Part shown: piece after piece, positions 3,833 through 37,550 of the stretch
How positions within the stretch are numbered: position 1 is the first letter of the stretch
How the letters are laid out: every line of letters begins with the position of its first letter
Sequence record: NC_019407.1
Length of the DNA: 64,000 nt
Reading direction: 5' to 3' (one strand)
Notes under the pieces: generated by a model
What the model saw: the letters and a program-made list of their open reading frames with translations, nothing else
Told to the model about the DNA's origin: nothing
Databases searched by the model: none
Translations under genes and position numbers: made by a program

Positions 3833-3876
3833 GTTGTGTCGACATAAGCTCTAGCCGTGGTTTTCCGGCCTGTCAA
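3833..3876 (-). promoter_or_regulatory. class-B promoter cassette (variant box)
   Basis: TTGACA-N17-TAGAGC-N7-GACACAAC, then GGAGG. Confidence 0.8.
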
Positions 3877-3892
3877 CACACAACCGCCAAGG

Positions 3893-3928
3893 GTCAAAAG
3901 AAAACCGCCGCCCCGAAGGACGGCGGTC
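3893..3928 (-). terminator. Rho-independent terminator
   Basis: ACCGCCGTCC-TTCG-GGGCGGCGGT followed by TTTCTTTT on the minus strand. Confidence 0.88.
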
Positions 3929-3953
3929 ATGACAGAGCATGTCAGGAGGGACG

Positions 3954-6077
3954 TCAGACGTCCAGAGCGAAGGCCGGCGGGGAGACGTCCGGCTTCTGAA
4001 TGATGAATCCCCGATCCAAGAGGGGCGGGAAGACCTGCTTGAGCACGCCGGCCGCGACCCCGGCTTCCTCGGCGATTTCGGCGAACGTGAAGGCCTCGCG
4101 CTGACCGGCGCTGGCGACAAACAGATCGTTGAGCGCCAGGATCACCGCGCCCGCCGGACTGATCTCGTAGGCCATGTCGAAATTCGGGTCTTCCGACAGC
4201 CGCAGCAGGCCTTCCGCCTCCAGGTTCGCGATGAGCGCCTTGAGTTGGTCGACCTTGACCGCGCCAAGATGGGTTTGGATTTCCCAGGGCGCCGCCGGCT
4301 CCTCGGCGCGCACGGCTTGCAGCGTCGCGATCAAGGCGATCGCCGGCATGGCCCGCACGATCATCTCGTCGCCAACCGTCAGGTCCGGGGTGTTGACCAG
4401 CAGGTCATTGATCACCGCGTCGCCGTGGGTCTCGACATAGGTCCGCAGCCGCTTGAGGGCGACCAGGAAATCGTCCTTGGTGATCGGCTCGATGCGGAAG
4501 GTCAGGAGCGGGTCGGTCGGAATCTCCGAGAAGTAGGCCCGACCCCGGTGGCTCCAGCCCTCGACCACATGCAGGAAGAGATCGATCGGCATGGCGACGG
4601 CGCCAAAGCCCAGTCGCGCATCGTCCGTCGCCTCCTCGACCTGCGCCAAGGCGTTGTCGATCGCTTCGAGCGTGAAGCCCCCGACAAGGCCGTTTTCCGC
4701 CGCGTCCAGCACGTTGGCCGCTTCTTCGGTGCCGAGCCCTTCGACGACCATTTCCGAGGCCTCCTGAGCCGTTTCCTGCGGCAGGGCGTCGGCGAGCTTG
4801 CTCATCGCCTCGGCGACGCCGCTCGTGTCGAGTTCCAGCTTCAGGGCCAGCTTCTCGGGACGCGCCGAGTAGGGCACGCCCTGGATCACCACGGCGCCCA
4901 GGTCGCCGACGACGCGCTTGGTCACTTCCAGATAGGCGTAGCGCGAGGCGGCGTTGAGCAGCGACAGCCGTTCGAAGACGATCTGCTGCTCCTGCTCGCG
5001 CGACAGGATGCCCGTCTCCAGGATGAACAGCGGCTCGGAGCCATCCAGCGGGGGCTTGGCCTCGCCGTCGTCTTCCGGAAGGTCCTCGTCGAAATCGGCG
5101 CCGCTGATCGGCTCGCTCTCCGGCGGGGTGAAGCGGATGCCCGGCTCGCGGGGCGGTTCGGCGGGAGTGGCGTCGTCGAGAGGCATGTCGGTCCTTTGAG
5201 GCTTGGAGGTGATGAAGAGCGTGGTGAGATCGACGTCCCAGACCCCGCGCCCGTCGGTGAAGAGCGCCATGAAGGTCCCCAGGCGCGCATCCCAGCGGAT
5301 GGTCTGGATCACGCCGTTGACGTCGCCATAGACGCCGGTCGCCCCCACGAGTTCATCGCGCAGGACCTCCGCATGGTCGTGGCACTCACCAAGCGTCGCC
5401 GGACGCACGGCGTGGAACGGGTATTGCTGATAGGCGCCCGGCGGCGAGACGAGGCGGACATTGACGTAGAGCGGCCCCAGATAGGTGTGGGCGTCGCGCA
5501 GGAAGCCGACCACGGTCTCCCCGTCGTTCTGGGTCGCCACCACGGGCATGCCGGCGCAGTTAGCCGTCAGGACCGCCGGATAGTCCTGGGGATAGGCCAC
5601 GGCGTAAAGGTGGAGATGATCACCCCGACGCTGGGCCTTCCAGTCGGCGACGCGACCGGCCGGCACGCGCGTGGCCCCAAACTCCGGCGTCTCCTCGATC
5701 AAGACGCCGCCGTCCGGAAGGTCCGCCTGCCCGACGTAAGGAACGACCTCGCTATGGCTGACGCTCCAGGCGGGCTTGGGAAATTGCGGGGTGATCATGA
5801 TCTTCTCGGTGAAGGTGAGATTGATGGCGTCGGCGTAGTGGACATACGGGCCGACCGGGGTAGTCCAGGGCGGATCGCCCTTGCGGATGTCCGACAGCGG
5901 CACCGCGACGTGCCTGCCGTTGGGCTGGACGATGTCGGCCAGGATGCGCGGCGGCTGGTGAATCAGGGTCACGACGTGCCCCTCGCCCGCCTCGAAGGTG
6001 CGGCTCTTGGGCCACCAGACCTTGGACCCGGTCCAGTGGATCGACTGGATGACGAGGTCTTGTTCGGTCCCGATCAT
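3954..6077 (-). CDS. large hypothetical protein with a possible C-terminal winged helix
   Basis: 707 aa with an acidic Pro-rich linker; ends FTFAEIAEEAGV...LLDRGFI. Confidence 0.8.
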   Translation of the reverse strand: MIGTEQDLVIQSIHWTGSKVWWPKSRTFEAGEGHVVTLIHQPPRILADIVQPNGRHVAVPLSDIRKGDPPWTTPVGPYVHYADAINLTFTEKIMITPQFPKPAWSVSHSEVVPYVGQADLPDGGVLIEETPEFGATRVPAGRVADWKAQRRGDHLHLYAVAYPQDYPAVLTANCAGMPVVATQNDGETVVGFLRDAHTYLGPLYVNVRLVSPPGAYQQYPFHAVRPATLGECHDHAEVLRDELVGATGVYGDVNGVIQTIRWDARLGTFMALFTDGRGVWDVDLTTLFITSKPQRTDMPLDDATPAEPPREPGIRFTPPESEPISGADFDEDLPEDDGEAKPPLDGSEPLFILETGILSREQEQQIVFERLSLLNAASRYAYLEVTKRVVGDLGAVVIQGVPYSARPEKLALKLELDTSGVAEAMSKLADALPQETAQEASEMVVEGLGTEEAANVLDAAENGLVGGFTLEAIDNALAQVEEATDDARLGFGAVAMPIDLFLHVVEGWSHRGRAYFSEIPTDPLLTFRIEPITKDDFLVALKRLRTYVETHGDAVINDLLVNTPDLTVGDEMIVRAMPAIALIATLQAVRAEEPAAPWEIQTHLGAVKVDQLKALIANLEAEGLLRLSEDPNFDMAYEISPAGAVILALNDLFVASAGQREAFTFAEIAEEAGVAAGVLKQVFPPLLDRGFIIQKPDVSPPAFALDV

Positions 6078-6499
6078 GCGGACGCCGCCGCGCCGGCCGG
6101 CGTCAAGCCGTAGATGGTGGGGCCTCGCGGCGACTTGCCGATCGCGACCACTTCCAGATAGCCCATATTGTTCAAAGCCTTTGCCGTTTCATGATCGGGA
6201 TGGTCGGTGAAGACGTTGAGCCGCCCGCCTTCGCCCATCGCCTGGGCGGCGCGCAGAAGGCTCGCCTCGGCTTCGGTCAGGGTGACCAGGGCGACGTCCT
6301 CCAGCGCCACGTCGATCACGCAGGTCTGACCCTGATGAACGAACTCGATGATCGCCAGCCGGCGATAGGTCCCCGGCAGGACCGCGAGGCAGACGCCTCG
6401 GACCTCGACCTTCTGGCGGGCGGTGATCGGGAGATAGAGGCTCGTCTTGACGGCCTTGCCCTTGAGGGACAGATGCTCGTGCGTCGCCAGCGGGATCAT
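6074..6499 (-). CDS. hypothetical protein
   Basis: ATGA overlap; C-terminal LNNMGYLEVV...YGLTPAG resembles a wHTH wing. Confidence 0.78.
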   Translation of the reverse strand: MIPLATHEHLSLKGKAVKTSLYLPITARQKVEVRGVCLAVLPGTYRRLAIIEFVHQGQTCVIDVALEDVALVTLTEAEASLLRAAQAMGEGGRLNVFTDHPDHETAKALNNMGYLEVVAIGKSPRGPTIYGLTPAGAAASA

Positions 6500-6741
6500 G
6501 GCTCGACCTTCCGGACAGTGTAGGAGAATTCGTCGTGGACGCGACCGTCGAAACTAGCCTCGTAGCCGGGGCCGAGTTCGGCCAGGATGCGCGCCTCGAT
6601 CTCGGCGAAGTCGATTTTCGCCATCGCCTGTTCGGCCGCCCGCATCTGCTGGAGGAAGCCGTCCTTGATCTGGCGCCCCGCCTCGGTGCGGATCGGGATG
6701 TTCTGGATCGGCGGCTCGGATTTCGACAGACGCTCGCCCAT
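6496..6741 (-). CDS. hypothetical protein
   Basis: 81 aa from MGERLSK, with ATGA overlaps at both ends. Confidence 0.7.
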   Translation of the reverse strand: MGERLSKSEPPIQNIPIRTEAGRQIKDGFLQQMRAAEQAMAKIDFAEIEARILAELGPGYEASFDGRVHDEFSYTVRKVEP

Positions 6742-7289
6742 CAGGCCCTCCGGCGATAGACCCGCACCGGGCGGGTGGGGAGGCGTTTCTCGGGCGGCTT
6801 GTAGGCGACCAGAGCATGGCTGATGCAGTAGACGCCCGCCTCGGCGCGGCACCCGCAATGGCCAAAGTCCGGCGAGTTCGGGTCGCCATAGGGCCAGCGG
6901 CACATTCCGCGCTTGAGTTCGGCCGTCGCGAACAGCCGCGCCGGGCGCGGCGGGATGACCGCCGTTCCTTCGGGGACCAGGGCGAGCTTGGGCTTGGCCG
7001 GCGGAGCGGGCTTTTCGACCTTCTTGGGCTTGCGCGCCGTGGCCTTCTTGACCTTGCGGACCTGGATGCCCAGGCCGCGCGTCTTCTTGCGGCGGGCGGT
7101 CGGAGGCGGAACCTTCTCGCCCAGTTCGCCGGCGGCCTTCAGTCGGTCGGCCTTGCCGCAGACGGCGCTCTTGGTGCGCGGCACGCTCAGGCGCTGACCG
7201 ATCTCCTTGGTCCCGACCGGCTCCGCCCAGAGCTTCTTGAGCAGGGCGATGTCCTCGTCCGGCCAGTCGGAATTCCGCTTCTTCACCAC
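6741..7289 (-). CDS. gcrA: GcrA-like cell-cycle transcriptional regulator
   Basis: N-terminal WPDEDIALLKKLW...TKSAVCGKADRL and C-terminal CRWPYGDP...FGHCG...YCISH match the two conserved GcrA domains, joined by a basic Pro-rich linker. Confidence 0.92.
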   Translation of the reverse strand: MVKKRNSDWPDEDIALLKKLWAEPVGTKEIGQRLSVPRTKSAVCGKADRLKAAGELGEKVPPPTARRKKTRGLGIQVRKVKKATARKPKKVEKPAPPAKPKLALVPEGTAVIPPRPARLFATAELKRGMCRWPYGDPNSPDFGHCGCRAEAGVYCISHALVAYKPPEKRLPTRPVRVYRRRA

Positions 7290-7296
7290 GCTTGCA

Positions 7297-7476
7297 CTAC
7301 TCCTTGATCTCGACGCTCTTGGGCGGATTGGGATGAGGAACGAAGACCAGGGCCACGTCCTGACCGCCGGTATAGCGCGTGCGCCGACTGTAGAGCCAGC
7401 CGCCTTCCACCGCCAACCGCTCGGTCACCTGACCATCGGCTTCGTCGATCTTTTCCCACTTGGACTTCTTAGCCAT
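7297..7476 (-). CDS. small hypothetical protein (59 aa, below the ORF-track cutoff)
   Basis: Hand translation MAKKSKWEKIDEADGQVTERLAVEGGWLYSRRTRYTGGQDVALVFVPHPNPPKSVEIKE, preceded by GAGGGG. Confidence 0.78.
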   Translation of the reverse strand: MAKKSKWEKIDEADGQVTERLAVEGGWLYSRRTRYTGGQDVALVFVPHPNPPKSVEIKE

Positions 7477-7497
7477 CTTCCCCTCGAATTTGGCGGC

Positions 7498-7526
7498 ACC
7501 CTAGAGGAGCGTTCGAGTGTTGACAA
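7498..7526 (-). promoter_or_regulatory. leftward sigma70-type promoter for the gcrA cluster
   Basis: TTGTCA-N17-TAGGGT on the minus strand. Confidence 0.65.
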
Positions 7527-7560
7527 GCACCAATGTCGCTGGCTTTCGAGTGTTGACAAG
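7512..7560. repeat. 16-bp direct repeat TTCGAGTGTTGACAAG x2
   Basis: Exact copies at 7512-7527 and 7545-7560. Confidence 0.9.
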
Positions 7561-7597
7561 TCCGGTGCTCGTCTATAGGGGAGACCGGGACGACAAC
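7553..7597 (+). promoter_or_regulatory. class-B promoter cassette
   Basis: TTGACA-N17-TAGGGG-N7-GACGACAAC, then AAGGAG. Confidence 0.8.
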
Positions 7598-7611
7598 GAA
7601 AGGAGCCTGCC

Positions 7612-7920
7612 ATGCGCTATGTGCTCGACTATGCCGACGACCGGGACAAGCCGGTCTACACCGATTTCCAGGCCGGCGACCGCAAGGCGGCCATCGCCAA
7701 GGCCAAGCGCCTGCTCGCCAAGGCGATCAAGACCGTCGATTTCTCGCTCCACGGGGCCTATATCTTCGTCGATCCGACGGGCGTCGCCCGCGACGTCGAC
7801 GACATGATCCCGTTCGGGATGCTGAGCACGATGGCCTACGCCAGCATCATCACCCCGTCGATGATCTCGTTCGACGACCGCGACGCCAAGGCGGCGATCG
7901 CCGCGAGGCTCGCCCAATGA
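7612..7920 (+). CDS. hypothetical protein
   Basis: First gene after the promoter, with SD AGGAG. Confidence 0.85.
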   Translation: MRYVLDYADDRDKPVYTDFQAGDRKAAIAKAKRLLAKAIKTVDFSLHGAYIFVDPTGVARDVDDMIPFGMLSTMAYASIITPSMISFDDRDAKAAIAARLAQ

Positions 7921-8129
7921 TGGATCGTCAGGACGTCAAGCCCGGCTTCATCTATCGCGGCGGCAAGAACGGAACCCTGCGTCAGATCGTGAGCTATGGG
8001 GCGACCGAGGATTTCGTCTGCTGGGCCAATCCCCACGATCGCCTGCCCTACGGCGGCTTCATCTCCACCATCTGCACGTCCAGGACGTCGTTCGCCCGCT
8101 GGGCCGACAAGATCGAGGAAGAGGTCTGA
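7917..8129 (+). CDS. hypothetical protein
   Basis: ATGA overlap chain. Confidence 0.75.
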   Translation: MMDRQDVKPGFIYRGGKNGTLRQIVSYGATEDFVCWANPHDRLPYGGFISTICTSRTSFARWADKIEEEV

Positions 8130-8401
8130 TGAACACCTTCTTCCTCCGGCAGACCAAACGGGATGAGCAGGGTCGACGCTACTTTGAGTTCGTCGATCCT
8201 GACCTGACCCAGCGCCTCTATGTCCGCAAGCCGCCGGACGACTGGTCCGAGGGCTTCCCGATCGTCCTGGAGGACTTCGTCGATGGCAAGCCCGCCGGCT
8301 CCATCATCTGCCCGGCCGGGAAGAAGCGGGGGCACGGCTTCGCGGCCTTCTTCAAGGCCAACCCCAAGGATTTCCGCAAGCTCAAGAAAGGTCGCCTATG
8401 A
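8129..8401 (+). CDS. hypothetical protein
   Basis: TGATG overlap chain. Confidence 0.75.
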   Translation: MNTFFLRQTKRDEQGRRYFEFVDPDLTQRLYVRKPPDDWSEGFPIVLEDFVDGKPAGSIICPAGKKRGHGFAAFFKANPKDFRKLKKGRL

Positions 8402-8655: not shown

Positions 8656-8663
8656 GAGGACCC

Positions 8664-9533: not shown

Positions 9534-9534
9534 C

Positions 9535-9789
9535 ATGCTGACCAAGGACGAGATCACCTTCGCGGGCCTGATCAAGGCCATGGAGGACGCCCGCCGCACC
9601 GCCAAGGCGGCGGGCGATCTCGTCAGCACGGCCGAGATCGACCGCTGGTTCAAGGAACACGCGCCGATCATCCGGGAGGTCCGCGACAAGGCCGAGGCCG
9701 ACGAATTCGACGCTGGCGCGAGAGTGTTGACAACCTCTGAGGAAGGGGCTAAAGACACCCTCGACGACAGCGAAAGGAGCCTGCCTTGA
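9535..9789 (+). CDS. hypothetical protein
   Basis: 84 aa; the 3' end overlaps the next promoter. Confidence 0.7.
   Translation: MLTKDEITFAGLIKAMEDARRTAKAAGDLVSTAEIDRWFKEHAPIIREVRDKAEADEFDAGARVLTTSEEGAKDTLDDSERSLP
9727..9771 (+). promoter_or_regulatory. class-B promoter cassette
   Basis: TTGACA-N17-TAAAGA-N7-GACGACAGC, then AAGGAG. Confidence 0.8.
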
Positions 9790-12857: not shown

Positions 12858-12878
12858 ATCTTTCCTGGCGCGAAAGTG

Positions 12879-12924
12879 TTGACAAGGTTCTGGGAACTCC
12901 TCTATACCCACGCTCGACGACAAC
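12879..12924 (+). promoter_or_regulatory. class-B promoter cassette
   Basis: TTGACA-N18-TATACC-N7-GACGACAAC, then GAGGAG. Confidence 0.85.
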
Positions 12925-12937
12925 GAGAGGAGTTCCC

Positions 12938-14698
12938 ATGGCCGAGACCATGTCCCTGAGTTTCCGGATCGAAGGCGCCGCCCTGGTGGAACGGGCGCGC
13001 GATCGCGTCATCGAAGGTAACTGGGAGCACGGCCTGCGCATCCTGGTCGAGGGCCTGCACGGCATGTCCTACGAACTCGCGATCGACATCCTGCTCGGCA
13101 AGCACACCCTGGGCGGCTGGTCCTCGGACCCCGAGGGCGTCTATCTCACCGACCAGGACCCGGAGGACGAGACTTTCAAGCGCTACAAGAAAACCCTCGA
13201 CTACCAGTTCGCCGGCGTCTTCAAGCTGGACGACGGCCGGATCATGCGCCCCTACGCGGTGGTCGACAGCTTCTCCAAGATCGACTTCGACTCTAGGGTC
13301 CGCTTCCTGCGGCTGGCCCAGGGCTCGGACCCGGTGTTCTCGCGCCCCAAGCGCTATCACGACCCCCGCGCCGAGATCAACGGCGAGGAGATCGACTGGG
13401 CCTATCGCGCCCTGCACTACGCCGACGAGCCGACCCAGGACATCGTCCGTCTGGTCCGCATGGAGGGCTTCCACCCCACGATCCGGGCGGCGGTCCTGTT
13501 CAAGGAAGTCCGCGACTACCCCAAGCTCCTGCTCCCGAAGGTCGAGACCGACGCCCAGAAGGCCGTCGACGTGGCGATCAAGGCCCAGCGTGGTCTCTCC
13601 AAGCGCGGGCACGTCTACGAGTATGGCGCTGGTCAGGACTTCGACAAGGAGCACTACAAGACCACCATGGGGATCGATCAGGTCCCCACCGCCTGGACCG
13701 TGCGCAATCCGAAGTACGTCGATCCCGACGCCAAGTTCGTGAAGGACACCCTGGCCGAGATCGACGGCGACAAGCGCCCGGCGCCGGCCGGTGATTACGC
13801 CGGCGCCATGAACCGGATGATCAAGGACGAGATGGACGGCGGCATGGACATCAGCGCGGCCGTCGCCATGACCCAGGCCAAGATGGCGCTGCTGGGCGGC
13901 ATGGCCGAGGACCCCGAGCAGCGCCTGCGGGCGATCAACGACGCCTACGCCGCCAAGTACGAGAAGGCCGAGGGCCGCAGCGTCGAGGAGTACCGCAAGG
14001 CCATCATCGCCCAGGCCGGCGATGATTTCTTCGATCTCGCGTACACGGATGTGAACGGCAAGGACGTCGTCCTGAAGGTCCCGACCGCGCCGTTCGAGCA
14101 GTGGGCGCTCTGGCGCACGGCCGGCTCCCACCTCGCCAAGCCCTGGAAGCGGGTGACCTACACCGGCTTCAAGACGTTCGGCGATGACCCCTATCACACC
14201 GACTGGGTGCTGGGCGCCGGGCTCAATCCCGAGGATTGGCCGATCATCGAGGCCGACAACCCGCCGCTCCACAAGGCCGCCTGGGACAAGCGCTTCCGGC
14301 TGGCCGAGGAGAAGCTGGGCGGCAACATGCGCGTCCTGCTCGGCAAGGGCTTCGTGACCGGCAAGATCGTGATGCTCAAGCCGGGCGAGGCCCTGTCACC
14401 GGGCGAGATCGGTGTGATCCGCAACGCCGGCCCCGACTACGTTCAGGCCGCCCAGAGCGCGATCGAGCACAACACCGCCTTGATCTGCGAGAACGGCGGC
14501 AGCGTCGCCCACCTCGTGGTCGAGTACCTGGACAAGCCCCTGCGCCTGACCCGGATCGAGAACGCGCGCAAGATTTTCAAGGACGGCATGACCGTCTACC
14601 TCGACTTTGACAAGTCGACGCGAGAGATCGCCAAGGGCGGCCTGGGGCCGAGCCCTGCCGATCTTGGCCTCGACACGGAATGGGAGATTTTCGAATGA
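12938..14698 (+). CDS. protein with a C-terminal PEP-utiliser mobile (phosphohistidine swivel) domain
   Basis: 586 aa from MAETMS; C-terminal GFVTGKIV...PGEIGVI...P...ALICENGGSVAH...DGMTVYLD resembles the PEP-utiliser mobile-domain pattern, with the His retained. Confidence 0.75.
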   Translation: MAETMSLSFRIEGAALVERARDRVIEGNWEHGLRILVEGLHGMSYELAIDILLGKHTLGGWSSDPEGVYLTDQDPEDETFKRYKKTLDYQFAGVFKLDDGRIMRPYAVVDSFSKIDFDSRVRFLRLAQGSDPVFSRPKRYHDPRAEINGEEIDWAYRALHYADEPTQDIVRLVRMEGFHPTIRAAVLFKEVRDYPKLLLPKVETDAQKAVDVAIKAQRGLSKRGHVYEYGAGQDFDKEHYKTTMGIDQVPTAWTVRNPKYVDPDAKFVKDTLAEIDGDKRPAPAGDYAGAMNRMIKDEMDGGMDISAAVAMTQAKMALLGGMAEDPEQRLRAINDAYAAKYEKAEGRSVEEYRKAIIAQAGDDFFDLAYTDVNGKDVVLKVPTAPFEQWALWRTAGSHLAKPWKRVTYTGFKTFGDDPYHTDWVLGAGLNPEDWPIIEADNPPLHKAAWDKRFRLAEEKLGGNMRVLLGKGFVTGKIVMLKPGEALSPGEIGVIRNAGPDYVQAAQSAIEHNTALICENGGSVAHLVVEYLDKPLRLTRIENARKIFKDGMTVYLDFDKSTREIAKGGLGPSPADLGLDTEWEIFE

Positions 14699-16734: not shown

Positions 16735-16779
16735 TTGACAACACTCTCGCGCCAACATAGAACCGCCCTCGACGACAAC
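16735..16779 (+). promoter_or_regulatory. class-B promoter cassette
   Basis: TTGACA-N17-TAGAAC-N7-GACGACAAC, then GAGGAGG. Confidence 0.88.
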
Positions 16780-16791
16780 GAGGAGGCTTCG

Positions 16792-17175
16792 ATGAAACTC
16801 GCGACCCAAGACCGCACCGATCCGCGCCTGAACGCGCGCTACCGTCTCGCCAAGGCGGTGTTCTATTACGGCGGCCCGCACGAGTACCCGATCCACCTGA
16901 ACGACTGGTGGAACGAGGTGACGCCGGCCGACGTCGAGGACCGCATCTCCGAACTCTGCCGCGAACTGTCCAAGCTGTCGGGCCAGACCCTGGCGCCGGC
17001 GACCTTCTACGAGCGGATGAAGCTGGGCTTCGTCGACCTCCCGGAAGTGAAGGACGAGGACTTCGCCGCCCTGTCGGAGACGACCCGCAACAACCTGCTC
17101 GCCATGCAGGACCGCTTCTCGGTCCACGGGAGCGGCTTCATGCTCTACTGGAACATCGTCAAAGAGGAGGCCTGA
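16792..17175 (+). CDS. hypothetical protein
   Basis: Start moved to MKLATQD after GAGGAGG. Confidence 0.82.
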   Translation: MKLATQDRTDPRLNARYRLAKAVFYYGGPHEYPIHLNDWWNEVTPADVEDRISELCRELSKLSGQTLAPATFYERMKLGFVDLPEVKDEDFAALSETTRNNLLAMQDRFSVHGSGFMLYWNIVKEEA

Positions 17176-18234: not shown

Positions 18235-18250
18235 TCCTGGCGTTCTTGTG

Positions 18251-18295
18251 TTGACAAGGCCGGCGCCGCTGGCCTAGAACGTCGTGGACGACAAC
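18251..18295 (+). promoter_or_regulatory. class-B promoter cassette
   Basis: TTGACA-N18-TAGAAC-N6-GACGACAAC, then AGGAGGG. Confidence 0.85.
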
Positions 18296-18305
18296 AGGAG
18301 GGACC

Positions 18306-18662
18306 ATGCCGCTCTACGACTTTCCGACCGGACCGACCACGATGGAGGACATCGAGGCGTTCGTCGCCGGCGCCCAGGCGGTGGTGACCGCCCAACTGGC
18401 CAAGGCCTTTCCCGGCGTGTCCGCGCCGGTCCTGGAGATCGCGCCGGTTCACCCGAGCAGCCAGTTCGCCAAGATCGTCGCGGTCGACGCCAGCCAGCGC
18501 TCGGCCTGGGCGTTCGTCCGACTGGAGAACGGCCTGATCTACAAGCCCTCGTCGTGGAAGGTGCCGGCCAAGCATGCGCGTGGCACGATCCACACCGCCG
18601 CGCACGGCGCCGAGTACGTCGACTGGACCGGCCCGCGCTACGTGAAGGACCTGCGTCGATGA
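18306..18662 (+). CDS. hypothetical phage protein
   Basis: GLIYKPSSWKVPAKHARGTI motif. Confidence 0.85.
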   Translation: MPLYDFPTGPTTMEDIEAFVAGAQAVVTAQLAKAFPGVSAPVLEIAPVHPSSQFAKIVAVDASQRSAWAFVRLENGLIYKPSSWKVPAKHARGTIHTAAHGAEYVDWTGPRYVKDLRR

Positions 18663-25940: not shown

Positions 25941-25960
25941 ATTTTGTTGGCGTTAGAACG

Positions 25961-26012
25961 TTGACAGCCTCGGCGTGATGTCATAAAAGCCTCCTCGACG
26001 ACAACGAGGAGG
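25961..26012 (+). promoter_or_regulatory. class-B promoter cassette
   Basis: TTGACA-N17-TAAAAG-N7-GACGACAAC; CCTCCTCG/CGAGGAGG inverted repeat. Confidence 0.88.
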
Positions 26013-26017
26013 CCCAC

Positions 26018-26437
26018 ATGGCTTACGCAATTCCGGACCTGAGCACGTTCACGTTCCACGACCCCAAGGTCGAACGGTTCGCCAAGGCGATGATCTCGAC
26101 GATCGAGACTGCTCAGACCATCCTCACGGCCTTCGCCAACGATCTCGCCGACAATCCTCTTCAGGCGTTCGAGCATAGCTACGGCGCCAAGATGGCCGCC
26201 GCCCACAGGGACGTCGCCAAGGGGCTGCTCAACGAGGTTCTCGACGCGCTGCTGCACGGTCAGGACAAGACCTGGGCCTACATCGGCCAGGACCTGCGCG
26301 AGCGGCTGATGTATCGCGTGATCTACGCGGCCTCGAACCCGCCGCGCTCGACCAACGTCGAAGGCAACGACATGGCCCGCTTCGTCCTGCGCGCCGAGGC
26401 CGACATGCTCGACCGCATGACCAAGAGCCGCTTCTGA
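26018..26437 (+). CDS. hypothetical protein
   Basis: SD GAGGAGG. Confidence 0.85.
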   Translation: MAYAIPDLSTFTFHDPKVERFAKAMISTIETAQTILTAFANDLADNPLQAFEHSYGAKMAAAHRDVAKGLLNEVLDALLHGQDKTWAYIGQDLRERLMYRVIYAASNPPRSTNVEGNDMARFVLRAEADMLDRMTKSRF

Positions 26438-27349: not shown

Positions 27350-27363
27350 TTGGCGTTCAAGTG

Positions 27364-27408
27364 TTGCCAAGCCTCTCGGCTTGCGCTACACCCATCGTCG
27401 ACGACAAC
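27364..27408 (+). promoter_or_regulatory. class-B promoter cassette
   Basis: TTGCCA-N17-TACACC-N7-GACGACAAC, then GAGGAGG. Confidence 0.8.
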
Positions 27409-27421
27409 GAGGAGGCCCCCC

Positions 27422-27616
27422 ATGCCACACCTGAGCAAGACGCCGTTCGACTTCGACTTCACCAGTGACGCTTTGGCGGCAACGCTGGAATTCGAGCGCA
27501 ACACCGCCGAGTTCTACCGCTACGAGACAGTCTTCACATCCGGTCGTGCGGCAATCCACGTTCTCGTCATGGAAGAAGACGGGAATTTCGTCGGCTTCGT
27601 CTCGGGTGAAGCCTGA
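27422..27616 (+). CDS. hypothetical protein
   Basis: Start moved to MPHLSK after GAGGAGG. Confidence 0.78.
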   Translation: MPHLSKTPFDFDFTSDALAATLEFERNTAEFYRYETVFTSGRAAIHVLVMEEDGNFVGFVSGEA

Positions 27617-27984
27617 TGCAACACCTCGACCCCCGCATCGGCGTCCTGAACTCGGGCGTCTACTACGCCTTCGTCGACGGCTACGACAAGCCCGAGACGC
27701 GCGGCACGCTCGAAGAGGTCGAGATCGCCCTGGGCCTGCGCGCTGCGAAGCCGACTCCGACCAAGCGCATCGTCGCCGCCCAGCCGGCCGTCAAGTCCTA
27801 CTCGGTCCACATGCGGTTCGAATATCCGGGCTGGAGCTACGTCGACGGCATCACCTACGAGGGCATGCTCGGTCGCACGAAGGCCGAAGCGATCCGCAAC
27901 GCCCGCGCCGAGGCCTTTGCCGACGGTCACCTGGGTGTCGGTCAGGGCCGCGTGTGGTTCAAGGCCACGGAAGAAGACGCCTAA
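27616..27984 (+). CDS. hypothetical protein
   Basis: TGATG overlap. Confidence 0.8.
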   Translation: MQHLDPRIGVLNSGVYYAFVDGYDKPETRGTLEEVEIALGLRAAKPTPTKRIVAAQPAVKSYSVHMRFEYPGWSYVDGITYEGMLGRTKAEAIRNARAEAFADGHLGVGQGRVWFKATEEDA

Positions 27985-30682: not shown

Positions 30683-30701
30683 CGGAAGGACCTGAAAGAC
30701 C

Positions 30702-31150: not shown

Positions 31151-31206
31151 TTGACAACACTCTCGCGCCAACATAGAAGGGCCTCCGACGACAACGCCGG
31201 AGGCCC
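31151..31206 (+). promoter_or_regulatory. class-B promoter cassette
   Basis: TTGACA-N17-TAGAAG-N7-GACGACAAC; GGGCCTCCG/CGGAGGCCC inverted repeat. Confidence 0.88.
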
Positions 31207-31211
31207 TTTTC

Positions 31212-31664
31212 ATGCCTTATCCGATCCAGATCGATCCCATCATCCTCGCCCTCGGCAGCGCCTGGAAGGCGGCCGACGCCTTGGCGCTCGACCTGCGCCA
31301 CAAGTGGTCCTGCGCCACCAATGACCGCAGCGCCTATGAGGCCTGGAAGGTCGCCGACGATGTGCGCAACGCCGCCTTCAAGGCCATGACCTACGCCCTG
31401 CCCGATCCGGGCAAGCCGGTGTTCATCAGCCCGACCGACTGGCTGGCCGACAAGGACAACTGGCGCACCGAGTACGCGCCGGTCCGGGTCTGGAACGGCG
31501 CGGACCACTACAAGGACTGGTACCCGTGCCTGGGCCACTACGAGTTCAACGTTCGCACCGGCGAGCGCTTCTACCGTGGGGCCGAGATGTTCGACCGCTG
31601 CGTCGAGGAGGCCGCCCGGCGCAATGCCGAGTACGCGGCATACTACGCCAAGCAGGCCGCATGA
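31212..31664 (+). CDS. hypothetical protein
   Basis: SD GGAGG. Confidence 0.82.
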   Translation: MPYPIQIDPIILALGSAWKAADALALDLRHKWSCATNDRSAYEAWKVADDVRNAAFKAMTYALPDPGKPVFISPTDWLADKDNWRTEYAPVRVWNGADHYKDWYPCLGHYEFNVRTGERFYRGAEMFDRCVEEAARRNAEYAAYYAKQAA

Positions 31665-32909: not shown

Positions 32910-32917
32910 GGGCCAGC

Positions 32918-33367: not shown

Positions 33368-33666
33368 GCGACCACGATGCCTGCCTGACCAACTGGGTCC
33401 TCTGCGACGCGCCCGGCGGCGGGCTGGTGGTGATCGGCGAAATCATGGCCGACAAGCGCGGGCGCTGGCCGGACGGGCGGCTCATCCACACCTCGCTCCT
33501 CCAGGTCAAGGCCGAGGCGGTGGCGCCGGGCGCGGTGGTCGCCACGCTCAACTCCCGCTACATCCTGGGGCGCAAGGCCGAGGAGATCACCGTCCGGCAC
33601 TTCGTCGGGGCGATGCTCGCCCGCGTCGCGATCAGACCGCTTGACAACACTCTCGCGCCAACATAG
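33364..33666 (+). CDS. hypothetical protein
   Basis: Start at MSDHDA; G.I..DKRGRWPDG..IHTS...TLNSRY motif. Confidence 0.75.
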   Translation: MSDHDACLTNWVLCDAPGGGLVVIGEIMADKRGRWPDGRLIHTSLLQVKAEAVAPGAVVATLNSRYILGRKAEEITVRHFVGAMLARVAIRPLDNTLAPT

Positions 33667-33685
33667 AAGGTTCCTCGACGACAAC
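33641..33685 (+). promoter_or_regulatory. class-B promoter cassette
   Basis: TTGACA-N17-TAGAAG-N7-GACGACAAC. Confidence 0.88.
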
Positions 33686-33688
33686 GGC

Positions 33689-33718
33689 TGTCCGAAATTT
33701 GTAGACGGATTTCGGACA
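33689..33718 (+). promoter_or_regulatory. leader hairpin or operator
   Basis: Perfect inverted repeat TGTCCGAAAT-N10-ATTTCGGACA between the promoter and the SD. Confidence 0.7.
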
Positions 33719-33733
33719 TAGAGGAGCAACCCG

Positions 33734-34117
33734 ATGGCCCAGCGCCTGAAGATCAAGGAAGTCGTGGTGGCGCAGCAGGACGCTGTCTACCACTGGCGTG
33801 GCGAGGAAGGTGACGAGTATCAGGTCATGAGCCTCGTCCACGTCCAGACCCTGGACGGCCGCTGGTTCCTGATGCCGGCCATGCGCCCCTACACGCGCGC
33901 CGAGGAGGCCGCGTTCGACGAGGCCTGCGGCGAAATCCTGTTTGGGATGAAGACCCGCTACTCGGACCCGCAGGCCTTCGCCGCCATCGTCCGCGCCGCC
34001 GGCTCGATCGATCCTGATCTGTGGGTCGAGTATCAGCCCGACACCCGCACCCTGGAAGAGAAGTTCCACGACGACTGGGTCGAGGAACAGTTCGACCGCC
34101 AACGCTTCGCCGCCTGA
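33734..34117 (+). CDS. hypothetical protein
   Basis: SD GAGGAG. Confidence 0.82.
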   Translation: MAQRLKIKEVVVAQQDAVYHWRGEEGDEYQVMSLVHVQTLDGRWFLMPAMRPYTRAEEAAFDEACGEILFGMKTRYSDPQAFAAIVRAAGSIDPDLWVEYQPDTRTLEEKFHDDWVEEQFDRQRFAA

Positions 34118-34127
34118 GGAGGACCCG

Positions 34128-34595
34128 ATGAGCTACCAACAAGCCCTGATGGACGCCCAGGCCGCGTTCCACGCCCACGAGATGGACGTCAACGACCGCG
34201 CCTGGGAGCGCTGGCTCAAGAAGCTGGAGGACGTCCTCGGCTTCGATGTCGACGCCGACAACTCCAAGGAGGCCAAGGCCTTCCACTGCGACATGGGCTA
34301 CTCGCTCGACGAGACCTTCGAGATGTTCGACAAGGGCATGAGTGTCGAGCAGGCCCGCGTCGCCATCCTGCGCGCGTGCTACGAGGCCGCCGCCCGCGCT
34401 GCTGGCGTGGGCCTGGACGCCCTGGTCGAGGCCGAGGCGCGCGCCGTCGCCACCCGCGACGCCCTGCCTGAAAAGCGCAAGGTGGACCGCGAGCAGTACG
34501 CCCGCTACGCCGAACTGCTGGGCAAGATGATCGCCCGCATCCGCGAGGTCGGCGACGACTCGGGCGCGGCGCTTGAGAAGGCGTTCGGCCAATGA
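34128..34595 (+). CDS. hypothetical protein
   Basis: SD GAGGAGG. Confidence 0.82.
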   Translation: MSYQQALMDAQAAFHAHEMDVNDRAWERWLKKLEDVLGFDVDADNSKEAKAFHCDMGYSLDETFEMFDKGMSVEQARVAILRACYEAAARAAGVGLDALVEAEARAVATRDALPEKRKVDREQYARYAELLGKMIARIREVGDDSGAALEKAFGQ

Positions 34596-34819
34596 GCGGC
34601 GGTCTCCACATGCGCCGGATCGATCACCCGCCGGGCCACGAGCTACATGGCGTCACCGAGCGCGAGTTCGAGTGGTTCGGCAAGTCCTACCACGTGCGCA
34701 AGGAGTCCGGCGCCGTGCGGGTCTGGGTCCGCAAGAAGCGCGGGAGCCACTATCGCTTCCTGGCGCGCGACAGCGTGATCGCCGCCTGCGTCCGCCAAGC
34801 CTCGGGGCTCTTCCAATGA
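34592..34819 (+). CDS. hypothetical basic protein
   Basis: ATGA overlap. Confidence 0.72.
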   Translation: MSGGLHMRRIDHPPGHELHGVTEREFEWFGKSYHVRKESGAVRVWVRKKRGSHYRFLARDSVIAACVRQASGLFQ

Positions 34820-35208
34820 GCCGCCCGTCGATCGCGGTGGTCGCCGCCACGCCGGCCCTGGCGCCCATGCACTGGGAGATCGTCGACCTCCAGGTCTGCG
34901 ACGACAGCCGGGTCAAGCTGAACGGCGATGGGACGATGTTCGCCCGCGCCGCCGATCCGACGGCGCTGGGCTGGATTCCGTTCAAGATCGTCCTGGGCTG
35001 CTTTGAGACCTTCGCCGACGCCTACGAGGCCCGCAACAAGGCCCGGTCGCTCTGGTTCAAAGCGGCCGAAACGGTCGACGCCGCCGCCGAGGCGGTGGTC
35101 GCCGCAGAACAGGCCCTGGCGCGCGCCCGCGCCGTCCAGGCCCAAGCTGAAAGCGCCCAGCGCGCGTCCTGTCGCGAGCCGTTCCTCGGCACGCCCACCG
35201 ACTACTAG
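34816..35208 (+). CDS. hypothetical protein
   Basis: Start moved to MSRPSI. Confidence 0.75.
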   Translation: MSRPSIAVVAATPALAPMHWEIVDLQVCDDSRVKLNGDGTMFARAADPTALGWIPFKIVLGCFETFADAYEARNKARSLWFKAAETVDAAAEAVVAAEQALARARAVQAQAESAQRASCREPFLGTPTDY

Positions 35209-35216
35209 GAGGTCCC

Positions 35217-35594
35217 ATGCGCAAGCCCAAGAAGACCGAGCAGGCCTATATCGTGTCGGGGACGTGGCCGTTTCCGACCGACATGCTGCGCTACGACGAC
35301 GCCCGCCCGGCGACCGAGGGCGACGCCAACCTGATCAAGGCCCTGGAGAGCGAGGACCCCTCGCTTTCAGACCTGCGCAACCGCGTCCAGATCAAGCTGA
35401 TCCGCCCGGCCAACGGCCTGCCCGCCGTCAAGCGCTGGGAGTCCTTCCTCTGGAAGGTCGTGGGCGGCGACGAGGAGGTCGCGGCGGACGTGGCGTGGCG
35501 CGAGGCCCTGGATAACCGCGACGCCCTGCGCAAGTCCGGCCTCGCCAAGCTGACCCCCGCCGAGCGCGCCGCGCTCAATCTCGACATCCGCTAG
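35217..35594 (+). CDS. hypothetical protein
   Basis: SD GGAGG; FPTDMLRYD motif. Confidence 0.82.
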   Translation: MRKPKKTEQAYIVSGTWPFPTDMLRYDDARPATEGDANLIKALESEDPSLSDLRNRVQIKLIRPANGLPAVKRWESFLWKVVGGDEEVAADVAWREALDNRDALRKSGLAKLTPAERAALNLDIR

Positions 35595-35608
35595 GACAAG
35601 GAGGTCCC

Positions 35609-36094
35609 ATGCCCTGCAATTCCGAATATCAACAGCCGAACGCGCGCGAAGCCGAGTCCAAGAAGGTCGCCGGCCTGCTGGTCTATGTCCACGATAAGCT
35701 GGGCCGCACCGATCTTTCGAGCAGCATCCGTACCATCGCCAACATCTATTACGGCGCGCCCGGCCGTTGCGATGAACTGACCGAACGGCTCTGCTCGATG
35801 CTGCGCGACCTGACGGTCGATGAGCAGAACGAGGTCATCTACGACGGCCGCAATCCCAAGGCGCGCGAACTGGCCGACTGGTGGGAGCGCCACCAGGAGC
35901 ATGACCGCAAGCGCGCCGAGGCCGAAGCCCAGGCCGCCAAGCCCACGCTGAAGCAAGCCGTCTCGGCGGTGATCGCCCAACTCGACTATTCGGCCGACGG
36001 CAAGGTGTTCCCGACCGAAGGCGGCGAGGCCCTGCCGCCGAAACTGGCCCAGGCGTTGAACGCCATGACCGACGCCTGGAACGACGGGCGCTGA
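35609..36094 (+). CDS. hypothetical protein
   Basis: SD AAGGAGG; starts MPC; LADWWERHQEHDRKR motif. Confidence 0.82.
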   Translation: MPCNSEYQQPNAREAESKKVAGLLVYVHDKLGRTDLSSSIRTIANIYYGAPGRCDELTERLCSMLRDLTVDEQNEVIYDGRNPKARELADWWERHQEHDRKRAEAEAQAAKPTLKQAVSAVIAQLDYSADGKVFPTEGGEALPPKLAQALNAMTDAWNDGR

Positions 36095-36111
36095 TCGTTG
36101 GCTCCGATGTG

Positions 36112-36157
36112 TTGACAAGAAGCGGCGGCCTCCTGTAGAAGCATCCTCGACGACAAC
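36112..36157 (+). promoter_or_regulatory. class-B promoter cassette
   Basis: TTGACA-N18-TAGAAG-N7-GACGACAAC, then AGGAGG. Confidence 0.85.
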
Positions 36158-36170
36158 AGGAGGCCCCGCC

Positions 36171-36665
36171 TTGACCGACACCATCGCGCCCGGAACCGAG
36201 TTCGAAGACGCCGTCGCCCTCGGCGTCGAGATCATCCAGTCCAAGCCGCCGCACCTGACCGCCCGTGAGGCGGTCGAGAAGTTCCAGCACCAGCCGGACG
36301 AGTTCCGCCTGCTGGTGACCCGCTTCAACAAGGCGACCGCCGCCTTGCCGGCGGTGGTCCACGGCCACCAGTTGCAGTCGACCTGCGCCAAGTGGGTGCT
36401 CGACTCGGCCCAGCGGTTGATCGACCTGCCGTTCGAGACGATCGAGCAGCGCGTGGCGTTCTACGCCAAGCAGATGACGCTCCCGGCCTACGGCTACCTG
36501 ATGGATCGCTACAAGGACCGGCTCGACGCCAAGATCGCCATCATCCGGGCCTGCCTGGAAGACCGCAACCACGTCGGTGCCAGCTACAACCTTGGCATCC
36601 TGGAAGAGGACTTCCAGGAGATGGTCGACCGTCACGACGATCTGGTCTCGGACGGCTACCCTTGA
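36171..36665 (+). CDS. hypothetical protein
   Basis: TTG start after AGGAGG. Confidence 0.8.
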   Translation: MTDTIAPGTEFEDAVALGVEIIQSKPPHLTAREAVEKFQHQPDEFRLLVTRFNKATAALPAVVHGHQLQSTCAKWVLDSAQRLIDLPFETIEQRVAFYAKQMTLPAYGYLMDRYKDRLDAKIAIIRACLEDRNHVGASYNLGILEEDFQEMVDRHDDLVSDGYP

Positions 36666-36672
36666 TGGGCGC

Positions 36673-36701
36673 TTGCAGCCGTCACAACTCCAGCCTAGCT
36701 T
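36673..36701 (+). promoter_or_regulatory. possible sigma70-type promoter
   Basis: TTGCAG-N17-TAGCTT upstream of a two-gene unit. Confidence 0.45.
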
Positions 36702-36737
36702 CCTCGCGCCGCGCTGTTGCGGTCATGAGGATTCGAA

Positions 36738-36998
36738 ATGGACAGGCTGAAAATCAAGCTCTTCGCCAAGGGTGTGCGGACCTCGTCCGAAGCGCTGCTC
36801 GACGCGATCGAGGCGCTTCCGGAGGGGCCGGAGAAGGATGCGGTGGTCGCGGCCGAGAAGCAGTTGCACGCGCGGCTGAACTGGGGCGCGGCGAAGGCCG
36901 GCGAGTTCTTCGGGGACGAGTCGATCTCCAGGCTCGCCACCCAGCGCACCGGCGGCGAGGACAAGCCGGACGCCCCCGAGGTTCCGCCCGGCGGCTGA
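36738..36998 (+). CDS. small protein with a Gly/Pro-rich C-terminal tail
   Basis: SD GAGGA; ends QRTGGEDKPDAPEVPPGG. Confidence 0.75.
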   Translation: MDRLKIKLFAKGVRTSSEALLDAIEALPEGPEKDAVVAAEKQLHARLNWGAAKAGEFFGDESISRLATQRTGGEDKPDAPEVPPGG

Positions 36999-37008
36999 CG
37001 GGTGCGTC

Positions 37009-37533
37009 ATGGGCCTGACGGGCTGCACCTTCGCAGTCCTGACGGCCGGCTCGGTCGCCTATGCGATCGACCGTGGCGGCAAGGCGCTGAAGCTCAGCGC
37101 CTTCCTGCTGCTGGCGTCCTGGGCGTTCTCGGTCACCCTGGGCCAGACCCTCAACGCGGGCATGAAGCCCTATGTCTACGCCTGGGTCGACGCCCTGTTC
37201 GCCGGCGCGATGGGGATATTGATCTCCGCCCGACTTCAGCGCTGGCGGGTCGCCCTCTTCACCCTGGCGATCGCCCAGATGAGCCTCCACCTGATCATGA
37301 TCGGGGTCTGGGATTTCTCGCTGCACGCGCGGCGCCTCCACATCCTGGCCCTCAACCTGACCTACGGCCTGGAACTCTTCGTCCTGACGATCGGGGCGGC
37401 GACCTATCGCGTCGAGGCCGAGGACGACATGCCGGCGGTGATCGAGGTCCAGCACCGCTTGATCGGGACCGACGACGGCCGCGTTCTCGATTGGCTTGAA
37501 TGTGTTGACAAAGCCAGAGAACCCGTCCTATAA
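37009..37533 (+). CDS. multi-pass membrane protein (about 5 TM)
   Basis: Several hydrophobic segments separated by short polar loops. Confidence 0.8.
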   Translation: MGLTGCTFAVLTAGSVAYAIDRGGKALKLSAFLLLASWAFSVTLGQTLNAGMKPYVYAWVDALFAGAMGILISARLQRWRVALFTLAIAQMSLHLIMIGVWDFSLHARRLHILALNLTYGLELFVLTIGAATYRVEAEDDMPAVIEVQHRLIGTDDGRVLDWLECVDKAREPVL

Positions 37534-37550
37534 GCTCCCTCGACGACAAC
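37505..37550 (+). promoter_or_regulatory. class-B promoter cassette
   Basis: TTGACA-N18-TATAAG-N7-GACGACAAC, then GAGGAGG. Confidence 0.88.

Follow-up and report, generated by a model that had tools for sequence, protein, structure and literature searches.

The CI RNA of P4 (seqA/seqC) and the c4 RNA of P1 and P7 (ant sites) pair with short repeated targets in the leader of their own operon and shut this operon down. In the P4 and P1 immunity RNAs the RNA and its targets must match, and this results in lineage-specific immunity types. T4 carries out a global shut-off of early messenger RNAs (mRNAs) with the RegB endoribonuclease and the RegA repressor, which act through a short shared sequence at or near the Shine-Dalgarno sequence (SD). 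The subject of the present analysis is a 9-nt sequence, GACGACAAC (the box), that is repeated in early-type promoters of Caulobacter virus Magneto (NC_019407.1), and its reverse complement, which lies in a predicted small RNA (sRNA) gene of the same phage. The box was studied in a stretch of 64,000 nucleotides (the window), in the whole genome and in related phages. It is read here, with a probability of about 0.65, as the shared target of a phage sRNA that would also cover the ribosome-binding site (RBS) and probably repress the early mRNAs. The P4 CI and P1 c4 RNAs are the nearest to this arrangement in logic; however, they serve one operon with one or two sites and occur in temperate elements, where they are processed from the same transcript, whereas in Magneto the proposed target recurs at about 20 promoters and the RNA is encoded separately, beside a tRNA cluster. 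RegB and RegA are proteins, while the agent proposed here is an RNA and the mark is a 5'-terminal leader.

VpdS of vibriophage VP882 and PreS of lambda resemble the predicted Magneto RNA in being short phage RNAs with their own promoter and terminator and a seed that pairs with mRNAs (PMC12197685; bioRxiv 10.1101/2024.10.31.621285). The phage sRNAs brought up by the literature searches come from temperate phages and prophages (VP882, lambda, prophages of enterohaemorrhagic E. coli), whereas Magneto is a virulent phage of 219 kb. The targets predicted here differ from those of VpdS and PreS in being the phage's own early mRNAs, about 20 units that would be reached through one common 5'-terminal sequence. 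A search by term in the phage sRNA review PMC12197685 brought up neither a Caulobacter phage nor a target of the shared-leader kind.

The PeSLs (promoter-early stem-loops) of T4-like phages resemble the Magneto cassettes in several respects (Arbiol et al., 2010, PMC2839356; Comeau et al., 2014, PMC4122927). Both are intergenic cassettes of ~60–100 nt among small genes of unknown function, and both combine a near-consensus sigma70 early promoter and a conserved upstream element with an SD and start codon at the 3' end. In both, a stem-loop can overlie the promoter and halt transcription from upstream. Some PeSLs are located at homology breakpoints between close relatives; in Magneto two clear cases were seen, at window 31148 and 27434, while the other breakpoints relative to phiCbK are away from cassettes. 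The PeSL is characterized by its stem-loop, however, while the stem-loop in Magneto is optional and not specific to cognate arms. The defining element in Magneto is a 9-nt initial transcribed sequence, which is lacking in PeSLs, and no complementary small RNA has been described for PeSLs. Two genome papers describe no promoters, and the papers searched mention neither early promoters nor a non-coding RNA of phiCbK. The literature searches, one of them for the box sequence, brought up no earlier account of box, cassettes or RNA.

Position and conservation of the box

Magneto is a phiCbK-like siphophage with a genome of 218,929 bp; phiCbK itself serves Caulobacter cell-cycle research as its standard phage. 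At 99.9% identity the window corresponds to the final 64 kb of the Magneto record (record position = window position + 154,929). It thus takes in the right half of the "early" region together with the right terminal repeat, from window 54,055 onwards. The exact box GACGACAAC has 10 copies in the window, all on the plus strand (7589, 12916, 16771, 18287, 25997, 27400, 31187, 33677, 36149 and 37542), while 0.43 copies are expected in a shuffled window and the maximum found was 2. With the variants GACGACAGC at 9763 on the plus strand and GACACAAC at 3840–3833 on the minus strand there are 12 copies in total. An earlier note on this DNA had claimed that the box stands at a fixed distance in 12 promoter cassettes, and this was borne out, since the box G is 36 or 37 nt 3' of the first T of a TTGACA-like -35 in 12 of 12 copies. 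The coordinates given in that note (7553, 9727 and so on, with 3876 on the minus strand) refer to the first T of the -35 and not to the box. The observation is real and far exceeds what chance would give.

The whole Magneto genome features 19 exact copies of GACGACAAC, 18 of which are inside TTGACA cassettes at 113–192 kb on both strands; when box variants are included the genome has 22 cassettes. The distance from the -35 to the box is 35–37 nt in these 22 cassettes and that from the -10 to the box is 6–8 nt. The box is asymmetric and has a single orientation at all promoters. It was also claimed that an SD usually follows the box directly. For 10 of the 11 plus-strand window copies the SD begins 0–4 nt past the box, and the minus-strand copy has one within a few nt. 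The exception is copy 33677, with its SD 35 nt and its ATG 48 nt past the box, a layout that is the same in Karma, Rogue and BL10; in the other window cassettes the start codon is located 10–16 nt past the box. In the 33677 type, where the ATG lies 48 nt away, the box thus keeps to the promoter.

The box was expected to be positionally conserved in related phages, and this is the case in Rogue, a phage of a different genus with proteins ~65% identical to those of Magneto. When Rogue promoters were chosen from the -35 and -10 alone, with the box ignored, 13 of 14 were found to have GACGAC at the place of the box and 12 of 14 to have the exact GACGACAAC, with diverged spacers and discriminators. 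Bajun, a Brevundimonas phage, has the same cassette, including the upstream CTTGGCGCGAGAGTG, and its boxes agree in GACGAC only. The likeness of GACGACAG to a conserved stretch of 16S ribosomal RNA was noticed post hoc and was not counted; distant relatives keep ACGAC and not AAC. IMG/VR contigs were scanned for TTGACA-N30/31-GACGACAAC, and the matches listed were mostly chance, with isolated single matches beyond the phiCbK-like contigs (Karma, Rogue, BL10). Several promoters of the same architecture are without the box, namely those at record 51663, record 112013 and window 44991. The last of these (44991–45033) reads GTG-TTGACA-18-TAGACC with an ATG 7 nt further on, and its mRNA is predicted to be leaderless.

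Cassette anatomy and transcription start

The elements of the cassette are, in order, TGGC, GTG-TTGACA, a spacer of 17–18 nt of unrelated sequence, a -10 of the form CTAnAnn, a discriminator, the box and the SD. The discriminator is C/T-rich, 6–8 nt long and has a pyrimidine at its end. The 12 window copies and the 22 genome copies have the features of sigma70/sigma73-type promoters, and downstream of each come an SD and a start codon in agreement with the annotation. Like Caulobacter sigma73 promoters, they have a -35 of TTGACA and a -10 of CTAnAnn with 23–24 nt from T to T. The sigma73 consensus is reportedly TTGACGS - 10–14 nt - GCTANAWC (Malakooti et al., 1995). The Magneto cassettes go beyond the sigma73 consensus in the TGGC 13 nt 5' of the -35 and in the conserved box at +1 to +9, neither of which is, to our knowledge, part of the host consensus.

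TGGC is exactly 13 nt 5' of the -35 in all 8 plus-strand subfamily-A cassettes of the window. The extended form TGGC(G/T) is present 13 nt 5' of the -35 T in every subfamily-A cassette, at the sRNA promoter and at boxless promoters such as that of rIIA; it is kept in Rogue and Bajun, and its spacing does not fit sigma54. It may be an UP-like element or a site for an activator. Subfamily B consists of the cassettes at 16735, 31151 and 33641, which are without TGGC and have an identical 17-nt spacer, ACACTCTCGCGCCAACA (16741–16757, 31157–31173 and 33647–33663). This spacer is also kept in cassettes of Karma, Rogue and BL10; conservation of this kind inside a promoter hints at another binding site or at recent copying.

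At box cassettes the base at -1 is C or T and that at +1 is G. By geometry and by this pyrimidine (-1)/G (+1) pattern, transcription should start at the G of the box. The earlier note had placed +1 at about this G and had reasoned that the 5' arm of a flanking inverted repeat may not be transcribed; the start 6–8 nt past the -10 agrees with the former, and it follows that the local promoter would leave the 5' arm mostly untranscribed. Because the box is 6–8 nt past a Caulobacter-type -10, it would occupy about +1 to +9 of ~22 early mRNAs, and the predicted start gives these ~22 Magneto transcription units a common 5' end, GACGACAAC(G), directly 5' of the RBS. A regulator-binding site, a conserved initial transcribed sequence and an SD-sequestering hairpin had been offered in that note, and the second of these fits best.

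The cassettes look like early promoters that are transcribed by the host RNA polymerase. RNA-seq of phiCbK classified 41% of the genes as early and found tgrL to be early and highly expressed (PMC10688885). The tgrL cloning primer of that study (PMC10688885) matches window 2556 on the minus strand, which identifies Magneto gp223, two genes behind the minus-strand cassette, as the tgrL orthologue.

A predicted small RNA gene carrying the complement of the box

The only exact GACGACAAC outside the cassettes is located at record 51,750 on the minus strand, where the plus strand reads GTTGTCGTC. This antisense copy is ~45 nt 3' of a boxless cassette-type promoter and just 5' of a long hairpin with a U-run. 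The RNA unit spans 51,698–51,797 in Magneto (NC_019407.1) and ~52,957–53,057 in phiCbK (NC_019405.1), and is therefore outside the window; the last tRNA gene is on one side and the genes that precede phoH are on the other, with no annotated gene in the unit itself. The unit consists of its own promoter, which has TGGC and no box, a 5' stem domain, an unpaired linker with CGUUGUCGUC, and an intrinsic terminator, which is annotated in phiCbK, Karma and Swift. In the Magneto linker a degenerate anti-SD comes after CGUUGUCGUC.

The 99-nt Magneto RNA folds with a z-score of -4.9. An alignment of Magneto, phiCbK, BL57, BL10 and Rogue reveals that CGTTGTCGTCAG is invariant while the promoter spacer has been replaced, that helix 1 has a compensatory change from GGACC/GGUCC to GGGGCC/GGCCCC, and that the indels are not multiples of three. 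In the consensus fold the complement of the box is in the linker, with the 5' domain on one side and the terminator on the other. The probability of being unpaired is 0.51–0.70 for the seed as compared with 0.27–0.39 for the whole RNA in 4 of 5 RNAs, and the Marchewka RNA is weaker in this respect (0.36 compared with 0.27). A stand-alone unit composed of a promoter, a structured RNA of 95–115 nt and a terminator is found in Magneto, phiCbK, BL57, BL10, Rogue, Colossus, PW, Bajun, Marchewka and Gurke. The unit has no annotated coding sequence, and any reading frame is broken by indels. The RNA has no family match in Rfam, a covariance model of the phiCbK type found no copy of it in the window, and a pattern scan that was agnostic of the seed matched only Karma, Rogue and BL10. 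On every feature that can be tested from sequence, the predicted RNA qualifies as a trans-acting base-pairing sRNA.

A promoter of the form GAATC-TTGACT with a leader that contains GTCGGGGAC(G/C)(A/G)AG is located right after the sRNA terminator (Magneto record ~51,825–51,917), before the first of the genes that precede phoH. This promoter and leader are kept in all lineages examined, including Colossus, Marchewka and Gurke.

Co-variation of box and seed between lineages

The match between the box and the RNA is weak by itself in phiCbK-type phages, because one chance copy is expected and the match was found post hoc, and the weight therefore lies on Colossus and the Brevundimonas phages. Colossus belongs to a different genus and infects the same host. 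The test on Colossus was fixed beforehand, in that the syntenic RNA site was read first and the promoters afterwards. At the syntenic site a structured RNA of ~113 nt (z = -4.1) is accompanied by a promoter and by a terminator that is annotated, and the linker of this RNA is CCUCCUGAUCGUCAAG, which contains UGAUCGUCA. Of ~13 Colossus promoters, 8 have (T)GACGATCA and another 2 have GACGATCT, at the same position as GACGACAAC. UGAUCGUCA is the exact complement of the Colossus box GACGATCA, and the frequency of this 8-mer in Colossus DNA gives a probability of ~0.002 that a 25-nt linker would contain it by chance.

The linker of the CcrPW RNA is as in Colossus. The Bajun RNA has CCGUCGUCAG with the seed CGUCGUC, without the GUU of the phiCbK type, and the Bajun boxes are likewise without AAC. 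Marchewka, a Brevundimonas phage, has an RNA with CCUCCGUCGUCAAG and the seed CCUCCGUCGUC, and its cassettes have GACGACG or GACGACA. The seed and target pairs stay complementary as they diverge, GACGACAACG with CGUUGUCGUC, (U)GACGAUCA with UGAUCGUCA and GACGAC(G) with CGUCGUC, with Gurke as an ambiguous case. The linkers of all lineages examined read as the reverse complement of a complete prototype leader with box, short spacer and SD, and the anti-SD tracks the SD flavour of the lineage, with GUCCUCC facing GGAGGAC in Marchewka and Gurke and CUCCUU facing AAGGAG in Bajun. In CcrSC, of which 43 kb were covered, the parts examined have 4 promoters without a box and no evident promoter-plus-RNA unit at the syntenic site.

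Specificity was assessed by counting the promoters that are perfectly complementary over 7 nt or more to the linker of their own phage or to two foreign linkers. In Magneto 16 of 22 promoters match their own linker, compared with 2 and 1 for the foreign linkers. All 14 Rogue promoters match their own linker (foreign linkers, 0 and 3), and in Colossus 10 of 15 do (foreign linkers, 3 and 3). The presence of different boxes on one host, each with an exact complement in the linker of its own lineage, makes an RNA partner likelier than a protein.

Proposed mechanism and alternative explanations

In the proposed mechanism the sRNA would pair with +1 to +10 of the early mRNAs and reach into the SD. 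The pairing would block binding of the 30S subunit and would probably promote decay of the mRNA. The sRNA promoter is of the early type, so the RNA would be expected to accumulate over time and turn the early set down. Published early expression peaks at 15 min and then declines, which the proposed shut-off by the sRNA fits (PMC10688885). A wider proposal, which is tentative and has somewhat less than even odds, is that a single sRNA times the whole early programme of this virulent giant phage, with every early mRNA carrying a short 5' "address".

Several points count against an sRNA that represses early mRNAs through the box. By chance alone, 219 kb should contain about one copy of the 9-mer, and the seeds in relatives are inherited, which leaves about two independent co-variation events (AAC with GUU and UCA with UGA). 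Raw duplex energies do not distinguish the lineages, since an SD will pair with any anti-SD; the Magneto leader with the Colossus RNA gives -33.9 kcal/mol. The box in the Gurke cassette is weak (TGACA..) and its linker matches are generally in the anti-SD part only, while among the 6 Bajun promoters just 1 has a match of 7 nt. The phiCbK-type covariance model detects the loci of the other lineages marginally, with E values of 0.049 to 2.8. Protection of the 5' end, an effect opposite to repression, is a possibility, and a DNA-binding protein with a specificity that drifts between lineages would likewise make the genomic copies co-vary.

The last point leads to an operator, in which a phage protein (XRE, helix-turn-helix, TrmB-like, GcrA-like or T5 A1-like) or a host protein would bind DNA over +1 and the copy in the sRNA gene would be another such site. 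The +1 region is a classic position for a repressor, the phage encodes many DNA-binding proteins, deletion of host XRE factors lowers the burst size of phiCbK (PMC10688885), and drift of specificity would explain a box that differs between phages of one host and is uniform within each genome. Position weight matrices derived from chromatin immunoprecipitation sequencing (S2 table of PMC10688885) were used to scan the whole genome. The matrix of RtrB, a host paralogue of TgrL, has its best site at one fixed register of the box in 16 of 22 cassettes, and half of the cassettes are at or above the genome 99.9th percentile; this is the only matrix that aligns to the box, with a moderate fit of ~10 bits out of a maximum of 18.8, and the matrices of TgrL, RtrA and CdxA do not single it out. 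The matrix of TgrL wants C or T at the box G, and with it just 2 of 22 cassettes come up to the 99.9th percentile, at scattered offsets, so the suggestion of a protein regulator at the box gains nothing from the phage XRE factor. The box is moreover asymmetric and always in one orientation at promoters, distant relatives keep ACGAC and not the ACAAC that resembles an XRE half-site, and the copy in the RNA gene is reversed, at +45 and in an unpaired linker. The anti-SD beside this copy follows the SD flavour of the lineage, which a DNA site would not need. An operator is therefore considered unlikely. A box that works only in cis, as an initial transcribed sequence tuned for start choice or promoter escape or as an unstructured C/A-rich leader that aids ribosome loading, agrees with the position at +1 to +9, the pyrimidine at -1 and the adjoining strong SD, and the boxless CcrSC leaders are also C/A-rich. 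A sigma-dependent proximal pause is conceivable, since GACAAC resembles the Caulobacter -10 TANAWC, although this likeness is post hoc and was not counted as evidence. Host preference alone, however, predicts no difference between phages of the same host, where phiCbK types have GACGACAAC and Colossus has GACGATCA. The complementary, co-varying sequence in the RNA gene would be left unexplained, and several promoters of the same architecture do entirely without the box, which makes a purely cis-acting box quite improbable.

The same weighing applies to two explanations that draw on the surroundings of the box. One holds that the hairpin is the main function, with the box as the loop of a stem between discriminator and SD that sequesters the SD or terminates transcription and perhaps has a loop recognised by a protein. 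About 11 of 22 cassettes are able to form a stem, the type found at 31187 and record 132256 has a 9-bp GC stem with TTTT and is annotated as a terminator in phiCbK, and in Karma and Rogue a C-to-T change in the 5' arm keeps a G-U pair, on the sense strand only. The PeSLs of T4-type phages also show that a terminator that overlaps a promoter can work (PMC2839356, PMC4122927). On the other hand, half of the copies have no stem, the box is as conserved in these as in the others, the local promoter does not transcribe the 5' arm, and the statistical comparisons described in the following section yield no consensus helix, no pairing excess over shuffled or slid controls and no advantage of cognate arms; a main function of the hairpin is very improbable. 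The other holds that recombination or gene conversion between cassettes, as shuffling linkers of the PeSL kind, keeps the box uniform with no selection on its function. Homology of Magneto to Karma, Ccr5, Ccr10, Ccr2, Ccr29 and RBC57 starts at window 31148, at the edge of cassette 31151, and an indel relative to phiCbK begins 12 nt after the start codon behind cassette 27400, with a homology break at 27434–27626; three cassettes also have the identical 17-nt spacer. Outside subfamily B, however, the spacers and discriminators are wholly different while the box is exact, and homogenisation would not pick out 9 nt. Most homology breakpoints with phiCbK are away from cassettes. Recombination as the sole reason for the uniform box is scarcely credible, and recombination of cassettes may be an added property rather than an alternative.

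If the sRNA reading is true, the address and the seed have diverged together in the phiCbK types and Colossus to give each lineage a private code, which could decide whether a resident phage silences a superinfecting relative. It would be a natural case of orthogonal RNA "codes" that evolve between phages of one host, and ~100 nt would provide a virulent phage with a regulon-wide post-transcriptional switch. It would also define an early promoter class for phiCbK-like phages, with ~22 units in Magneto and a fixed upstream element and leader. The leader and sRNA would be a compact, portable control pair for Caulobacter genetics, and early shut-off in a large phage would be open to direct testing with compensatory seed and box mutants. 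If the RNA proves silent, the catalogue of cassettes and the lineage-specific +1 box still constrain models of early transcription.

Flanking inverted repeats and the terminator-like hairpin

The inverted repeats that had been reported around some boxes are present at 25989–26013, at 31179–31210 and at the minus-strand copy. The first is an 8-bp repeat, GCCTCCTC/GAGGAGGC, around the gp274 box with a folding energy of -17.5 kcal/mol, and the minus-strand copy has TGTCG/CGACA. The arms were said to change together and the hairpin was suggested to sequester the SD, and neither extends to the family. About 11 of 22 cassettes can fold with the discriminator pairing to the SD and the box as the loop, which leaves about half without a stem. 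RNAalifold on 57 distinct cassettes from six genomes found no consensus helix, and a count in fixed register gave 51.3% paired cells compared with 49.9% in shuffles. Swaps of the 5' and 3' arms between cassettes, evaluated as duplexes, gave p = 0.36, and p = 0.63 when the 31187 type was left out. Minimum free energies of native and swapped arms gave p = 0.007, which is due to two identical copies of one hairpin. Co-variation of the hairpin as a family feature was rejected after these minimum free energy swaps, the RNAalifold and register counts, and the duplex swaps. The ability to form a stem is a property of two consensus sequences (CCTC and GAGG) and not of single copies, the box is equally well conserved in cassettes without a stem, and the flanking inverted repeat is thus incidental to some of the copies. 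It could form in read-through RNA only.

The hairpin at 31179–31210 is the only specific terminator-like hairpin in the window cassettes, and it has a twin at record 132,256. It consists of a 9-bp GC stem, GGGCCTCCG/CGGAGGCCC, followed by TTTT, as is characteristic of an intrinsic terminator with its GC-rich stem and T-run, has an energy of -25.4 kcal/mol and ranks 1 of 21 against swaps; the phiCbK orthologue is annotated as a rho-independent terminator. Its 5' arm is in the untranscribed discriminator, so the hairpin is expected to form in read-through RNA only. The hairpin of this type would terminate upstream transcription, and the local promoter would fire from inside its loop.

The cassettes of the window

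The minus-strand cassette (3814..3889) precedes gp225-gp224-gp223 and features TGGC at 3889–3886, the -35 TTGACA at 3876–3871, the -10 TAGAGC, the box GACACAAC at 3840–3833, an SD and a GTG start at 3816. The remaining cassettes are on the plus strand. The gp231 cassette (7540..7614) has TGGC at 7540, the -35 T at 7553, the box at 7589–7597, the SD at 7601 and ATG at 7612. The gp239 cassette (9714..9788) has TGGC at 9714, the -35 T at 9727, the variant box GACGACAGC at 9763–9771 and a TTG start at 9786. In the gp245 cassette (12866..12940), with TGGC at 12866 and the -35 T at 12879, the spacer is 18 nt, the box is at 12916–12924 and the ATG is at 12938. The gp252 cassette of subfamily B (16735..16794) is without TGGC and has the spacer ACACTCTCGCGCCAACA at 16741–16757, the box at 16771–16779 and ATG at 16792. 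The gp256 cassette (18238..18308; TGGC 18238, -35 T 18251) has its box at 18287–18295, 6 nt past the -10, and its ATG at 18306.

The gp274 cassette (25948..26020; TGGC 25948, -35 T 25961) carries the box at 25997–26005, in the loop of the inverted repeat, and ATG at 26018, and the gp278 cassette (27351..27424; TGGC 27351) features a -35 of TTGCCA at 27364, the box at 27400–27408 and ATG at 27422. The two other cassettes of subfamily B are those of gp284 (31151..31214), with the box at 31187–31195 and ATG at 31212, which overlaps the hairpin at 31179–31210, and of gp290 (33641..33736), with the box at 33677–33685, a leader hairpin at 33690–33717, the SD at 33721 and ATG at 33734. The gp290 leader hairpin, GTCCGAAAT..ATTTCGGAC, is between the box and the SD and is kept in Rogue and BL10 with a changed loop and 3' arm. 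The last two cassettes are at 36099..36173 (TGGC 36099, -35 T 36112, box 36149–36157, TTG start 36171) and at 37492..37565 (TGGC 37492, -35 T 37505, box 37542–37550, ATG 37563).

Other promoters and repeats

A second promoter class has the form TGTC(G/A)T-GAATC-TTGACA, in which a CcrM site (GANTC) abuts the -35. It has 19 copies, which are often followed by GTTAACCA; one is at window 48808–48818 and 18 are at record 18,346 to 114,460, mostly in structural and replication modules. Since the phage encodes a GcrA homologue (window 6741–7289, minus strand), the promoters of this class may be GcrA-dependent.

The right terminal repeat contains, at window 56252–63181, repeats of 45–67 nt, CGTTTACCTTTTGTTAAC..CTCTAGGGT, with CtrA boxes resembling TTAA-N7-TTAAC 5' of small genes. 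For phiCbK-like phages, both the clustering of CtrA sites in the terminal repeats and the CtrA-activated promoters located in them have already been published (PMC9437464). At least 6 GGGGACCCTGG iterons ~24 nt apart are found at 54906–55062, just inside the terminal-repeat boundary at 54055, and three tandem 38-nt repeats, ACGCG.GAGCGTTTTGACG..GCATTTTT, are found at 55829–55942. The iterons and the 38-nt repeats could be origin, packaging or end-recognition elements. A 112-nt direct repeat with 71% identity is located at 38013–38124 and 38366–38477 in neighbouring small genes, and is probably a tandem gene duplication.

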